From positions 124,001-188,000 of the forward strand of contig OZ251244.1 in the NCBI GenBank assembly GCA_965240325.2: a DNA stretch of 64,000 bases. The letters run 5' to 3'. Below the pieces are notes generated by a model. That model worked only from the letters and a program-made list of their open reading frames with translations. It was not told the origin of the DNA and searched no databases. The stretch's first letter is position 1, and each line of letters starts with the position of its first letter. Source of the stretch: Rebecca billardiae RCC1528. Taxonomy: Eukaryota > Protista > Haptophyta. Shown one piece after another: positions 55,964 through 62,800 of the stretch. A program made the position numbers and the translations under genes.

Positions 55964-57449
55964 GGCGTGATGGCGATTCCGGAGAAAAGAAAAGCCGGAC
56001 CTGACGGTGAGGACCTCCTCCTCACTCTGAACTCCTCGGAGCACGGCCGGAGGAGTGAGGACCGCCGCGGAACGCCCAAGTCTAGTGCACGACAGCACGA
56101 GCTGCTCGGCGCACGGCTGTCGCGTTCCGCTTCGGACACGCGCGCAGTGCGCGTGACACTGCGGTTCTGCATCGTGACGCGCTCCGAAAGTTCGTTCTTT
56201 GGAAGTTCGCCTCCCATTCCGCCTCGCCGCAGCCGCCTGAGACAGTCCGGTGACGGCCCGAGCACGCATGCATCAGCCTGCGGCATCGCCGCGCAAAGCG
56301 TCAAGCATGGCATTTGACTTGTGGTACACTAGAGCCGTGACGACAGCTTGCCCAGAAAGCCGTGCGCCCGCGTCGAATGCCATGGGCTGCCTCAACGGTC
56401 ACTAGCGCCCCGACCATTGCCTAGTGAGCACTGCGCCGCACCGATTCCCACCGTCGTCGGCCACTGAGTCTGAGTGAGTGCCTCACAACTGAGTACTGAG
56501 CAACCAGATTCAGATTGCAGCGGATCTGATGGACATTAGACAAGGTACTCGGCAGCACACGGTCGCGGTCGCGCCAGGTGGAGCCTTATCACACACAGCG
56601 CACATAATTCGCGCCTGTGTTGCCAGACACGCCGCCCGGATGGCGGGCAGGTGCGCGCACTGCGATTCACTTGATTCAGCCCGCGGAGGCCGCTAGTGGA
56701 CTGACGCTTTGTGCCGCGATGCGTGCACACACGCATGCTAGATTGCTCGGCTTGCGGGCGCAGCGGAGTGCGGCACCAGGGGCGATGAGCGACACGCGAC
56801 AAGCATCGTGATGCATATCCGCCTGCACCCATCAGGCGTGGACCGCAGCCGAAGCATTATTATTGCGATGACGCGAGTAGCGATGAATCGGTGCAGCAGG
56901 CGCGACGCTCATCAGTCATCAGTGCCAAACGCCGTGAAGAAGCGCGCGGGCAAACATCAGGCGCATCGGATTACAATTAGGAGATCGTCATATTCATCAA
57001 CGGCTAGCGAGCGGGCTCGTCCTGCCCAGTCGGGATGTAGCGTTCAAGCGGCGATGGCTGCTTGATTGCCTTGATGCCATCAATCCGGACTATGTGGCGG
57101 TAAAAATGTAATCTGAAGATGAGCGCGCGGAAAGATCCCGACTCATAAACTGAGCGGCATTTCCGCCGCGTGCGCGCGTGCGGAAGAACTCGAGTCATCA
57201 CCCCACACGATAATGAATAGTGTTTCTCTACTCCTGTCTTGTATTTGCAAGAGCAGGTAACATTTACAGGTACAACGACAAGGCCCTTGACAAGGCACTT
57301 GGACGGCGGGAGGCACGGCCACCCGCCCGCGCGCGCGCGAGCCCGCGTTTCGGGCGAGGCAGTTGGCTGGGGCCCTCCGACCCGCAAGCAGCTGGCGTCG
57401 CGTCCGAGCATCTCCACGGTCGACGCGCGCGCTCGGCGACGAAGCGCCG

Positions 57450-59495
57450 ATGGCGGCCCGACTCATCCCGACGGCGCAGCCGATGTCGCGCAAGTGGTCG
57501 CGCTCCTCCCTCCTCGCGCTGAGCACGCAGTCCTCCGCCCTCCTCGTCTGCGGCGGCGCCTCCGCCGAGGAGGCGGCACTCGCCGAGGCGAAGCTGCACA
57601 CCGCCGGCTTTGCGCGCGTCGACGTCGCGCGCTCCTTCCTGTGCGCGCTCGAGGCGGTGGACGCGGACGTGCGCGACGCGGGCTGCGTGGCATACACGCG
57701 CATCTTCTGCGACGTCGGCGCGTGGGAGGCCAACGCCGTCACGTTCGTGCGCATGCTCCTCTCGAGCGGCTGGCCCGTGTCCGTGGTCGTCCTCGCCAGC
57801 GCGCCCGCGCGCGGCTCGAGCGCCGAGGCGGCGTGCGCGCTGCTCAGCTCGGCGTGCGGCGTGGACGGCGTCCTTCGGCGCGGCGCGACCGCGCTCGAGC
57901 TCGCCGACTACGCGAGCGGCTTCGAGGAGGCCGCCGACCGCTCGCTGAGCGTGCAGGCACTGCTTGGGCCGATGCCGCGCCGCCCGTCCGACAGCGAGCT
58001 GGCGCCGCCGGCGCAGGACGCGCCGCGCGGCGTGGAGCCGGGCGCGCCGCGCGCGCTGCCCTCGCGCGCGCGCGCGTACTGGGACGTCGTGCCCGGCGAG
58101 CAGATCGAGACGCACATCGTGGTGATGGGCTGCGCGCTGCTGCTCGAACAGCTGCTCGCGGGCAGCGGCGGCGGCGGCGGCGGCGGCGCGGCGGCGGCGG
58201 CGGCGGAGGCCGAGGCGCGCGCGGCAAAGGCTGCCGGGCCCGTGGGCGGCGCCGGCGTGGAGGGCGCAGGCGGCCGTGGTGACCGAGCGTCGCCGCTCGG
58301 CCTGCCCGACGTCGGCGCCGTGCACTCCGCGCTCGAGTACCAGAACGAGTACGGCGGCGCGTGCGCGTCCAAGCCGGCCGAGTGCGCGTGCGCGCCGACG
58401 CGCATCCACAGCGGCGGAGGCGGCGGCGGCGGCAGTGGCGGCGGCTGCTGCTGCTGCCCGTGCGCCGCTGCGCTGCCCACGCCGCCGCGCGCCGACAGCC
58501 CGCGCGGCTCGCCGCTGCTGCTCTCCGACACGAGCGACGACGACGAGGGCGATGGCGGCGCCGCCGACGGCGCGTTCGGCAGCAGCGACAGCGGCAGCAG
58601 CGGGTGCGCATCGCCGCGCTCGGCCACGCGCGGACGCGGAGGCGGCGGCGCGCGCGCGGCGCCCGCAGAAGCGGAGGCGGAGGCGGAGGCGGAGGCGGAG
58701 GCGCCGCCGAGCGCGCAGGACGCGTACCGCTTCCTGATGGTGCTCAAGCTCACGCTGGAGCTCGACGACCGCCTGCTCGTCGTCGCCGCCGTCTACCTGC
58801 AGCGGCTGTGCGCGACGCTCGGCGCGCGCGCGCTGCGCGGCCGCTGGCACGAGCGCGTGCTCGGCGCGGCGGTCGTCGGGCTCAAGGCGCACTCGGACAC
58901 GCCGCCCACGCTGGGCGAGCTGGGCTCGCGGCTGGCGATGTGGAGCTGCGACGCGCGCCAGCTGCGCCAGCTCGAGGCGGCCGTGCTGCGCGGGCTGCAG
59001 TGGCGCACGCTCGTGCGCGCCTCTCAGTACGAAGGCACGCGCATGCAGCTGCGCGCGCTGCACGACACGCGCTGCCCGCTCGCGCACGGCGGCGCGGCGC
59101 ACGAGCAGACGCGGGCGCCGGGGGGCGAGCGGGGCGCCGCCGCCGCCGACGGCGACGGCGACGAGGCGTGCCGCGAGACCTCGCCGCCGCACCGCTACGA
59201 CGGCTTCGCCTCGCCCTCGCCGCCCTCGCGCCGGCTGCGCGAGCGTCGCCCGTCCGCTTGCTCGCCTAACGCGCTCGTGCGCCGCTCGCCCGCCGCCTCG
59301 GCGCGGCCCTCGCCCTCGTCCAGCGGCGGCTTCCGCAGCCGGCGCGCGGCGGCGCAGGGCGGCGCGAGCTCGACGGCCGGGGCGACGGGCGGTGCCGGCG
59401 CGCTCCCGCTCGGGGCGCTGTCCGCGCCGCTGCACCTGCGCCCGCCGCCGGGCACGGCGCCGACCATCACTGTCAGCGCGTGGCGCGAGTGCTGA
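57450..59495 (+). CDS. Receiver (REC)-like domain fused to a cyclin Y/PHO80-like cyclin box
   Basis: REC-like ~57531-57911 (ALLVC...YTRIFCDV...FVRML...PVSVVVLAS...GVDGVLRRG..ALEL); cyclin box ~58703-59065 (PSAQDAYRFL...VAAVYLQRL...RVLGAAVVGLK.HSD...LRQLEAAVLRGLQWRTLVRASQY...LRAL); intronless. Confidence 0.75.
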   Translation: MAARLIPTAQPMSRKWSRSSLLALSTQSSALLVCGGASAEEAALAEAKLHTAGFARVDVARSFLCALEAVDADVRDAGCVAYTRIFCDVGAWEANAVTFVRMLLSSGWPVSVVVLASAPARGSSAEAACALLSSACGVDGVLRRGATALELADYASGFEEAADRSLSVQALLGPMPRRPSDSELAPPAQDAPRGVEPGAPRALPSRARAYWDVVPGEQIETHIVVMGCALLLEQLLAGSGGGGGGGAAAAAAEAEARAAKAAGPVGGAGVEGAGGRGDRASPLGLPDVGAVHSALEYQNEYGGACASKPAECACAPTRIHSGGGGGGGSGGGCCCCPCAAALPTPPRADSPRGSPLLLSDTSDDDEGDGGAADGAFGSSDSGSSGCASPRSATRGRGGGGARAAPAEAEAEAEAEAEAPPSAQDAYRFLMVLKLTLELDDRLLVVAAVYLQRLCATLGARALRGRWHERVLGAAVVGLKAHSDTPPTLGELGSRLAMWSCDARQLRQLEAAVLRGLQWRTLVRASQYEGTRMQLRALHDTRCPLAHGGAAHEQTRAPGGERGAAAADGDGDEACRETSPPHRYDGFASPSPPSRRLRERRPSACSPNALVRRSPAASARPSPSSSGGFRSRRAAAQGGASSTAGATGGAGALPLGALSAPLHLRPPPGTAPTITVSAWREC

Positions 59496-59890
59496 CATGA
59501 CCTGCTGACGATGTGTGATGAGCGACGAGCAGCGCTGCCGCGGCCGGGCCGGCGGGTGCGACCGACGACGTCGACCGAAGACGACAGCTGTATGATGTCG
59601 TATAGTACAATATATAGGTCCGCCGGCGCATATATCTGGCGGTAGCAGCAGCCGCCGCCGCATGCATTACTTGACTGTCGCGCGTAACTATAATGCTGTC
59701 GCCATATCTGCATATCAGCCTCAGGCTCAGCTATACGCCTACGGCAGTGTGAGTGAGTTCAGTGATATATATATATGAGTATATATAATCCGCGCGGACG
59801 AAGCCGCGCCGGATCGAACGATGCGCGCATCAGTAGCCGCTATACTTATTATATATATATCATCATCAACGGCAGAGCTACTCGCATCAG

Positions 59891-62800
59891 CTACTGCAAT
59901 GCGCTCAGGCCGACGACCGTCACCGTCGCCGCACGCGCGAGGGCGAGCGCATCGCGCGTGTGCAGCACGGACGCGTGGCTCGCCGAGCGCAGGGGCACGC
60001 GGCCCACGCTCGCGGGCTCCGGCCGCGCGCCGTGCGCGTCCGACGCGGTCGCGTGCCATGTCGCACGCCGCTGCGACGGCAGCGGCAGGGCAACGCTATC
60101 GCTCGCGCGCCGCGGCCGGCGGCGCGGGGGAGGCTCCGCGCCGCTGGTCGCTGCCTCTGCTGAGTCCGGCGAAGCAGGGCTTGCCACCGCCGCCGCGCCT
60201 GCCGCACGGACGAGCGGCGCGTGCGCAAGCGCCCCGCCGCTGCGCCGCGCCCGCCGCCGCTCGGGCGAGCACGGGGCCGAGTTGGTGCGCGGCGCGGCGC
60301 TTGTCGGCGGCGTCGCGCTCGTCGGGCGGCGCGGCGCGGGCGGCGTCGCGCCGAGCGCGCGCGCCGAGCGCGCGGACGCGCCGCCGCCGCGCGCGCGCGC
60401 GCCCTTGCCCGCGCCGCCGCGCATCAGCTGCGTCAGGTTGGCCGACAGCGCTCGGAAGCCGCTCACGAAGCCGCCGCCGCCGCCCGAACTCGGCCGCGCC
60501 GCGCTCGCGCCGAGCGCGCCCGGCACCGGTAGCGCTGGAAGCGACTGCCGGGTGCGCGCGGCGCGCGCGCACTCGGCGCCGCCGCCGCCCGCCGTGCCGC
60601 CGCCGCCGCTGCCCGCCATCGGCGCGGCCGCAGAGGGCGGCACGGGCGGCGCGGAGGCGCGGCGCGTCTCGGTGGGCGGCGCCACCATCGAATCATGCGC
60701 CGCCTCCGCCGCCTCCTCCGCCTCATCGCGCTGCTGCTGCTGCTGCGGCTGCTGCTGCTGCGGCTGCTGCTGCTGCGATGGTGGCGGCAGCGGCAGTGGC
60801 GGCTGCGCTGCCGAGCGCTGATTCGGCGAGGGCGGCGCGGCGTCGGCCGCGGGCGCCACGGCCGGCGCGACGGCTGCTGGTGCGCGCACGTCCGGAGGCG
60901 GCGCGGCCGCGGGTGCCACCACCGCGGCCGCGGCTGCGGGTGGGGCAACGACGGCTACTGCGCCTGCGGCAGCCGCCGGCGCCGCCGCGGCTGCCGCGCC
61001 GCCGCCCGCCGATGCCGCGCCTTCGGCCGCGGCCGCGCGCTCTGCGCCTGGCGCCGCGCCGCGAGGCGTGGCGGGCGCCGGGGCGGCGGCGGCGGCGGTG
61101 GCGGCGGGAGCCCCAGGGCTTGCGCGTGCGGGCGCGGCGGCGCTGGCGGGTGCGGGCCATGCGCATGCGCCAGGGCTCGCGGGCGGAGGCGGCCACGCGC
61201 TCAGCGGCGCGCGCGGCTCGGCGTGTGCGCCGAAGCCGTTTGCGGCGGCGGCACTCGGCGCCGCGCTGCGCGCGGGCGTGGGCGCGGGCGTGTGCAGCGG
61301 CGTGGGCGGCGCGAGCGGCGGCGGCGCCACGCCCGCCGCCGCCTCCGCCGCCGCGGCGACCGCCGCCACGCGCAGCGCGTCAGGCGGCCGCAGCTGCGCC
61401 AGCGCGCCGTGCGCCTCCGCAGACACCGGCACGCCCGCCTCCCGAAGCTGCGGCGGACGCGCGAGCGCGGCGGACGCGCGGGCGCGGGCGCGGGTGTTGG
61501 CGCGCGCGCGTCAGCGGCCGGCTGCACGCGCGGCAGACGCGGGCGGCGCGCGCCTCGGCGCGCCGCCGCGTGGCTGCGCGCGGCGGCGCGCGCGGCGCCC
61601 GCCCCCGCGCCCGGGGTTGGCGCACCCACGCACCCACGCACCCACGCACCCACGCACCCACGCACACACGCACACACGCACACACGCACACACGCACACA
61701 CGCACACACGCACACACGCACACACGCACACACGCACACACGCACACACGCACACACGCACACACGCACACACGCACACACGCACACACGCACACACGCA
61801 CACACGCACACACGCACACACGCACACACGCACACACGCACACACGCACACACGCACACACGCACACACGCACACACGCACACACGCACACACGCACACA
61901 CGCACACACGCACACACGCACACACGCACACACGCACACACGCACACACGCACACACGCACACACGCACACGCGCGCTCCGCCTCCGCCTCCGCCTGCGC
62001 TGTGCTGCGCTGTGCTGTGCTGCGCTGTGCTGTGCTGGGCTGGGCTCACCTGTCCGAGCAGCAGGTCGATGGCGCCGTCCCGGAGTCCGAGCTGCTCCAG
62101 CGCCAGCCCCTGCAGCCCCTCGCGCATGCGCAGCTGCAGCTCGAGCTGCATCACCTCGAGCTCCATCAGCTGCGCGCACGACAGCAGCCGCAGGAACGGG
62201 CGCAGCGCGACGGACCCGCCGCCGCCGCCGGCGGCGGCGGCGGCGGACGGCTGCGGCGGCGCGGCTGGTTGCGCGGCGGCGGCGGCGCGGGGCGACGGCG
62301 CGCTCGGCGAGGCGCGCAGGCGCGCGCACGCCGAGAGCACAGGCGACGGCTCGGCGGCGGAGGGCGGGCTCGGCGGCGCGGGCTCGGCGGCGGACGCGGC
62401 AGGCTGGCTCAGCCGCCGCTGCCGCGCGCCGCCGCGCGAGCCCGGCGCTCGCTCGCGCGCGCCCGCCGCCGCGTGCAGCTGTGTGTACAGCGCCGCTGCC
62501 CCGGCCTCGTTCGCCTGCAGGCCACACGCGAGGCGCTGTGGGCGCGCGAGCGCGCGCGCGAGCGCGGCGCGCGGAGGGGCGCGGGGGGCGGCGGGCGCGC
62601 GCGGGCGGGCGCGCGTGGACGTCGGCACACGGCGCGCGCAGCGCAGCGGCGGTGGGCGCGCGCGCGGCGCGGCGCGGCGCGGCGCGCGCGGCACCTGACG
62701 CGTGGCCTCGTTGATGGCCTCCGCACGGCTGCGTCTCGCCGCCTCCGCCTCGAGCGCCGCCAGCGCGTCCGCCGCCGCCGCCGCCGCCATCACCGCCGCC

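Follow-up and report, generated by a model that had tools for sequence, protein, structure and literature searches.

We analyzed a 64,000-nt stretch of the haptophyte Rebecca billardiae RCC1528 (contig OZ251244.1, positions 124,001–188,000, forward strand), hereafter the window; all coordinates are positions within it. A complete gene at 57450–59495 predicts a protein of 681 aa, in which a receiver-like domain with a degenerate active site lies upstream of a cyclin Y-type box. This gene probably belongs to a small family of receiver–cyclin Y fusions. No second copy was found within the 64-kb window. The features of the gene are listed below with the evidence for each in parentheses. GC3 is the GC content at third codon positions, P0001 is the ortholog, and canonical members are those of the family with an intact receiver active site; both are described further on.

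57450–59495, plus strand: complete single-exon coding sequence, 681 aa followed by TGA (open reading frame and GC3 edges)
57531–57923, plus strand: receiver (CheY-like) fold with degenerate active site, aa 28–158 (profile, hhalign, AF2, Foldseek, VIA)
57537–57557, plus strand: beta1 and following loop, ALLVCGG versus canonical ALIIDDD, Mg-binding acidic pair absent (family alignment, AF2)
57711–57713, plus strand: Asp88, phospho-acceptor position kept at the end of beta3, RIFCDV (alignment)
57795–57797, plus strand: Ala116 at the Thr/Ser position of beta4 (SVVVLAS versus SIVMVTG)
57879–57884, plus strand: Arg144-Gly145 replacing the Lys-Pro of beta5 (GVLRRGA versus AVLSKPV)
58089–58160, plus strand: conserved hydrophobic helix, aa 214–237, VPGEQIETHIVVMGCALLLEQLLA (kept in P0001; helical in the single-sequence model)
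58161–58721, plus strand: low-complexity linker of ∼187 aa with Gly/Ala runs, CCCC and an AE repeat (GC3 0.87–0.97, coding)
58722–59066, plus strand: cyclin Y-type cyclin box, aa 425–539 (sub-threshold in Pfam; PDB profile matches)
59067–59492, plus strand: low-complexity tail rich in Ser/Pro/Arg/Ala, aa 540–681 (GC3 0.93–1.0; absent from the ortholog)

The DNA here is 65–82% GC, and stop-poor open reading frames (ORFs) are common. Because long ORFs mean little in GC-rich DNA, codon-position composition was used as the coding test. The frame opens with ATG at 57450, with a second ATG (Met12) at 57483 as an alternative start, and closes with TGA at 59493–59495. Its GC3 is 0.955 overall. In 90-nt bins, GC3 rises at precisely 57450, from 0.70 (the value of the in-frame stretch upstream, 57363–57449) to 0.97, stays at 0.87–1.0 in all bins before the one holding the stop (0.83), and lies at ∼0.4–0.7 beyond the stop. 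This signal is absent from the other two frames, and the flanks (57000–57300 and 59600–59800) are 41–61% GC and intergenic-looking. No low-GC interval occurs in the frame, and therefore both linker and tail are coding and the gene is intron-free. A preliminary description of this DNA had placed both domains in one intron-free frame, which the ATG-to-TGA ORF and uninterrupted GC3 signal bear out. Thus, the ORF at 57450–59495 is more than a chance ORF. An antisense ORF of 799 aa spans the whole gene (57264–59663, minus strand), and ORFs of 150–350 aa in other frames are Arg/Ala-rich and lack the GC3 signal. These antisense and other-frame ORFs are not genes but a side effect of GC richness on the coding strand.

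When 5.8 billion proteins were searched by word matching with the window protein, a single relative emerged: P0001, a 439-aa protein from Logan contig L001. P0001 matches residues 24–228 at 59% identity and residues 420–539 at 72%. The sequence between these blocks is mostly unalignable, and the linker of P0001 is much shorter than that of the window protein. The P0001 ORF starts six residues ahead of the first strand, directly after an in-frame stop, and ends 12 aa past the cyclin box. Since P0001 matches both blocks within a single ORF, a second species has them joined in frame as well.

On its own, the window N-terminus gave no match to PF00072 even at E 10, and none among PDB sequences. 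Weak hits in Pfam or PDB to mS54, F1-ATPase and enoyl reductase, obtained with the N-terminus alone or together with the ortholog, were rejected as relatives (E 0.1 or worse). When the profile of the window protein and P0001 was searched against 1.84 billion representatives using HMMER, seven further proteins were recovered, with E values of 1.1e-7 to 4.4e-4. Four of them, P0002, P0004, P0005 and P0006, as well as P0003 (a truncated copy of P0002), score 46–58 bits on PF00072 (Response_reg), for which the cut-off is 30.2 bits. These proteins carry the DDD, D, T and K-P signatures of canonical receivers and are closest by sequence to the receivers of RcsC and Sln1. An hhalign run between the profiles of the window clade and the canonical clade gave a probability of 98.05% (E 1.4e-13, 105 columns).

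Structural predictions agree. AF2 modeling of window residues 20–177 with a nine-sequence alignment (pLDDT 73.3, pTM 0.70) gave five strand–helix units in the order b-a-b-a-b-a-b-a-b-a, with beta1 at aa 29–34 and the first helix from aa 39. The best PDB matches to this model in Foldseek were the receivers of Sln1, CKI1 and ETR1, and CheY (E from 8e-5, TM 0.74–0.77 by target). In VIA-align, a hybrid-kinase receiver matched over 121 of 122 residues (Z 14.3, rmsd 2.5 Å), and receivers made up 50/50 of the matches listed. A feature search of the ESM Atlas placed the N-terminus with response-regulator clusters at 0.93, sharing few features, and provides a lead only. These profile and modeling data indicate that the N-terminal ∼130 residues are a CheY-like receiver fold, descended from fully canonical receivers. 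A receiver had been proposed for this region, with a CheY-like outcome expected from Foldseek, and the hhalign probability of 98%, the (beta-alpha)5 model and the structural matches, all of them receivers, uphold that proposal. The motifs quoted in its favor are found at aa 82–89 (YTRIFCDV), aa 110–117 (PVSVVVLAS) and aa 137–145 (GVDGVLRRG).

We then compared the active site with those of canonical members. The end of beta1 reads CGG in the window protein and CSG in its ortholog, versus DDD in canonical members. In receivers, this acidic pair binds the Mg2+ that is required for phosphotransfer. Asp88 is aligned with the D of RIFCDI in canonical members, and that D aligns in turn to the acceptor Asp of the RcsC receiver. 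At the beta4 position, the window protein has Ala116; the ortholog has Ala, followed by Glu. The Ser reported earlier at this position is in fact the residue that follows, and the ortholog does not conserve it, so that assignment does not hold. The ortholog pair at the end of beta5 is Arg-Asp (LSRD), with Arg144 kept. Hence, one of the five signature positions is kept (Asp88) and four are replaced, one of these four conservatively. The preliminary description had noted the altered acidic pair and Lys-Pro, and had cautioned that the domain might be a pseudo-receiver. Both points are supported by the alignment and hhalign (CGG; Arg144-Gly145).

Because the Mg2+-binding acidic pair is lost, we read the window domain as a pseudo-receiver, which would be unable to catalyze phosphotransfer and would be fixed in one signaling state. 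Phosphorelay input to the window protein appears unlikely, since four of five active-site positions are replaced. A clock-like role, also suggested for the receiver, would go no further than analogy.

The C-terminal block was assessed in the same manner. For the window protein, Cyclin_N scores 16.8 bits with the whole protein and 20.7 bits with the domain alone, below the 23-bit cut-off. Human cyclin Y (9r2i_D) is matched at E 0.052 by the window sequence alone, at 5.1e-6 by the window–P0001 profile and at 1.4e-20 by a seven-sequence family profile, with cyclin B1 and PHO80 far behind (E 0.13–0.85). A canonical family member alone matches cyclin Y at E 4e-11. Identity between the window box and cyclin Y is ∼25–30%. 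By these comparisons, the C-terminal block is a single cyclin box with cyclin Y as its closest solved relative, as had been claimed for this segment. The cyclin string quoted in support of that claim (IYRF...LVYLERL...ASKVWDD) is the sequence of human cyclin Y itself; the window sequence that aligns to it is AYRFLM...AVYLQRLC...GLKAHSD...RQLEAAVLRGLQW.

In the cryo-electron microscopy structure of CDK16:CCNY:14-3-3, CCNY K225, W227, D229, E253, Q261, S269 and Y271 are contact or structural residues (PMC13168255). The deposited cyclin Y chain carries a +5 shift in numbering, and applying it recovers the identity of each of the seven residues. Six of the seven are matched in the window protein: Lys479, Asp483, Glu509, Gln517, Ser525 and Tyr527 align to K225, D229, E253, Q261, S269 and Y271, respectively. 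The remaining position, W227, is His here and throughout the family. Lys479 and Glu509 also constitute the helix 3 Lys/helix 4 Glu pair of cyclins, which is thus retained. Because this pair and most CDK16-contacting positions of cyclin Y are kept, the box probably still binds a PCTAIRE/PFTAIRE-like cyclin-dependent kinase (CDK).

Between the two domains, the conserved helix at aa 214–237 has a counterpart (H..AMGAALALAVHV) ∼25–40 aa ahead of the cyclin box in canonical members. It may be an N-terminal helix of the cyclin domain, displaced by the 187-aa low-complexity insertion. When the cyclin Y alignment was extended upstream, it did not reach this helix. The linker is mostly unalignable with that of P0001 apart from weak short matches; an acidic Ser-rich motif, DSPRG-P..LSD.SD (aa 349–370, 58494–58559), is conserved with P0001. 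In-frame simple repeats occur at 58161–58235 (Gly9-Ala6), 58410–58460 (Gly7-Ser-Gly3-Cys4) and 58665–58703 (GAGGCG, encoding (Ala-Glu)6), and all three are absent from the ortholog. Beyond the gene, an AT-rich intergenic stretch with TATATATA runs occupies 59590–59790, and a similar TATATATATATATG tract lies ∼240 nt past the stop of the ortholog (L001 2000–2030). The next ORF downstream (59891–61432, minus strand, 513 aa) is Ala/Pro-rich with a poly-Gln/Pro-Gln tract.

The very large protein collections searched here yielded ∼17 family proteins in all, that of the window included, and none outside the group. The only species-labeled entry is P0004/P0009, from Pavlova sp. CCMP459 (EukProt/MMETSP). 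Among MMETSP transcripts, P0009 (677 aa) and P0002 (512 aa) are annotated as complete; Pfam matches for both domains were obtained with P0002 and with P0004, which represents the P0009 cluster. In each of the Logan genomic contigs L002–L006, the cyclin box lies downstream of the receiver, on its strand but in a shifted frame, which points to introns. Both domains are joined in every family member, complete transcripts included, in line with the fusion originally proposed. A metagenome scan for the receiver pattern gave a single locus, L007, which was rejected as a chance hit: the contig is bacterial, at 49% GC, and the matching segment falls within a spurious ORF antisense to a real gene. Canonical genes (L004 1040–1900; P0015) contain short introns, and one of these interrupts the cyclin box immediately after KAH. 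Gene calling either ran through these introns or split them, yielding separate ‘CheY-like’ and unnamed proteins. At the KAH point, the window gene is intron-free.

Family members fall into three clades: those with canonical receivers, those in which Asp is changed to Glu, and the window gene with its one ortholog. This grouping is unordered and made without an outgroup. Members of the Asp-to-Glu clade (P0007 on L002/L003, P0008, P0012 and P0013) have GSD or GRD after beta1 and Glu at the acceptor position, and keep the Thr and Lys. Samples SRR30872635 and SRR30872636 each hold one canonical and one Asp-to-Glu member. Because both occur in each sample, these are probably paralogs in one organism. 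Word-based searches with a canonical member, using either the whole protein or the cyclin region alone, detected no such architecture outside the family. The ESM Atlas contained no large cluster joining PF00072 with a cyclin family, and full-text literature searches found no paper describing a receiver–cyclin architecture or link. In the data covered here, then, the family appears small and was found only in pavlovophyte-type haptophyte data.

We therefore consider it reasonably probable that the window carries an intact single-exon gene for a 681-aa member of this small receiver–cyclin Y fusion family, belonging to its degenerate-receiver clade. Several points weigh against this reading. Alone, the window protein falls under the Pfam thresholds for both domains, and the DEQVW.EDF motif that other clades share with cyclin Y is lost in the window clade. 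The single-sequence AF2 model of the full protein is poor (pLDDT 38). The AF2 receiver model shares its alignment with canonical receivers and so is not independent of them; these sequences may enter the alignment because their homology to the window clade is significant on its own. The gene is known from DNA-level sequence, and P0001 contig L001 may likewise be a DNA contig. Finally, the ratio of nonsynonymous to synonymous substitution rates (dN/dS) between the window gene and P0001 is no more than moderately reduced (receiver, 0.55; cyclin box, 0.41), and these values are hard to read and constitute weak evidence, because extreme codon bias depresses dS. They are compatible with constraint, and drift without function could also produce them.

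These points bear on four other explanations. The gene might be a decaying or functionless duplicate of a canonical receiver–cyclin gene, its ORF surviving through the scarcity of stop codons in GC-rich DNA. The dN/dS of 0.41–0.55 in the domain blocks would fit, as would the long low-complexity insertions and the 142-aa tail absent from the ortholog, and chance long ORFs do occur here, such as the 799-aa antisense ORF. Yet GC3 is 0.955 across the frame with sharp edges at the ATG and stop, two species keep the domain blocks at 59–72% identity while their linkers have diverged almost beyond alignment, and both the core motifs of the structure and the Lys/Glu pair of the cyclin box are kept. Hence, we think decay unlikely. 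Still less do we favor a merged gene model, in which two neighboring genes, or one gene plus a non-coding ORF upstream of it, had been taken for a single gene. Such an artifact would account for the ∼187 aa of low-complexity sequence between the blocks, but it is scarcely credible given a coding GC3 signature that continues with no low-GC interval, an ortholog that joins the blocks in one ORF by a much shorter linker, and complete transcripts of paralogous family members that carry both domains.

The remaining two explanations concern what the protein does. If it were a true phosphorelay target, Asp88 would be phosphorylated by a histidine phosphotransfer (HPt) protein or hybrid kinase, coupling His-Asp signaling to a CDK. 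This we regard as very unlikely. Beta1 ends without an acidic residue in either ortholog (CGG, CSG), at the place where by established receiver chemistry the acidic pair holds Mg2+ for phosphotransfer, and in both the Thr is lost and Lys-Pro is changed; set against this are the acceptor Asp present in both orthologs, Arg144 as a conservative replacement of Lys, and two Glu residues that open helix 1 shortly after beta1. Alternatively, the cyclin fold could act without a CDK, as a protein-binding scaffold or a transcription factor-like module, with the receiver serving for dimerization. Consistent with this, the box is under the Pfam cut-off, the DEQVW.EDF segment is lost in the window clade, and the N-terminal segment with which CCNY grips CDK16 (residues 38–53) has no recognizable counterpart. 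The idea nonetheless seems quite unlikely, as cyclin Y is the only significant solved relative and K225, D229, E253, Q261, S269 and Y271 are matched.

How might an intact receiver–cyclin Y fusion with a degenerate receiver act? In animal cyclin Y, CDK16 binding needs the CDK face unmasked by phospho-dependent 14-3-3 binding. In the canonical paralogs, the receiver could gate the CDK-binding face of the cyclin in cis via Asp phosphorylation, its N-terminal regulatory position corresponding to the role of phospho-Ser/14-3-3 in animal cyclin Y. In the window paralog, this gate would no longer answer to phosphorylation. One possibility is that the window protein then works as a constitutive cyclin. 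The other is that it pairs or competes with the canonical paralogs while blind to phosphorylation, by way of receiver–receiver or receiver–HPt contacts. More broadly, pavlovophytes may have wired a His-Asp phosphorelay into CDK control, with the receiver replacing the phospho-Ser/14-3-3 gate. Phosphorylatable, phosphomimetic (Asp to Glu) and phosphorylation-dead forms would make up the circuit, and the window protein would supply a signal-independent baseline or an antagonist of the responsive paralogs. We offer this scheme tentatively and consider it somewhat doubtful as a whole; its functional link from phosphorelay to CDK is one that we infer from sequence.

Several known systems resemble parts of this protein. 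Animal cyclin Y (CCNY; PDB 9r2i/9r2n) shares its single cyclin box and the helix pattern of that box with the window protein, and is itself a gated cyclin, its CDK face being unmasked by a phospho-dependent partner. Unlike CCNY, the window protein lacks a Gly2 for N-myristoylation, starting MAARL, or MSRKW from Met12. Nor were the two 14-3-3 phosphoserine motifs of CCNY recognized; the flanks are of low complexity and unalignable to CCNY, and no motif analysis of them was made. No counterpart of the N-terminal segment of CCNY that grips CDK16 (residues 38–53, PMC13168255) was recognized, and a receiver fold occupies the N-terminal regulatory position of the window protein. PHO80-like and P-type (U-type) cyclins belong to the same broad single-box branch, and the family weakly matches PF08613 and PHO80 (2pk9). 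These matches are not significant (E 0.85 for PHO80; below cut-off for PF08613), and cyclin Y is far closer.

With response regulators and hybrid-kinase receivers (PF00072; Sln1, RcsC, CKI1), the window protein shares the (beta-alpha)5 fold and an acceptor Asp at the end of beta3. Unlike them, its acidic pair, Thr and Lys-Pro are replaced, and its sequence has no Pfam match. Receiver domains occur with many outputs, among them DNA-binding, enzymatic and protein-binding domains. Literature and Atlas searches found no record of a cyclin box as a receiver output domain, and in the literature searches no eukaryotic cyclin under two-component control came to light. The receiver–cyclin Y family is thus apparently undescribed, with the window gene as its degenerate-receiver member. 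Genes of this kind escape domain scans, since each domain taken singly falls below the Pfam thresholds.

A further parallel for the receiver is offered by the plant pseudo-response regulators (PRRs, including TOC1) and other pseudo-receivers: there too, a receiver fold in a eukaryote has been stripped of its phosphorylation chemistry yet persists in a regulatory or interaction role. In plant PRRs, which function in transcription, the pseudo-receiver is accompanied by a CCT motif; a Pfam search of the window protein found neither CCT nor any other extra domain. Replacement of the acceptor Asp by Glu is typical of plant PRRs, and the Asp-to-Glu sister clade (P0007/P0008) has Glu at the acceptor as they do. 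The window copy shows the opposite pattern, keeping the Asp and losing the other sites. Should the fusion function in the way its domains imply, a single protein would lead from environmental sensing through histidine kinases to a CDK, which would be a new way to gate a cyclin. The three active-site states within one small family (canonical, Asp-to-Glu and the stripped version here) amount to a natural experiment on which receiver functions outlast the loss of phosphorylation.

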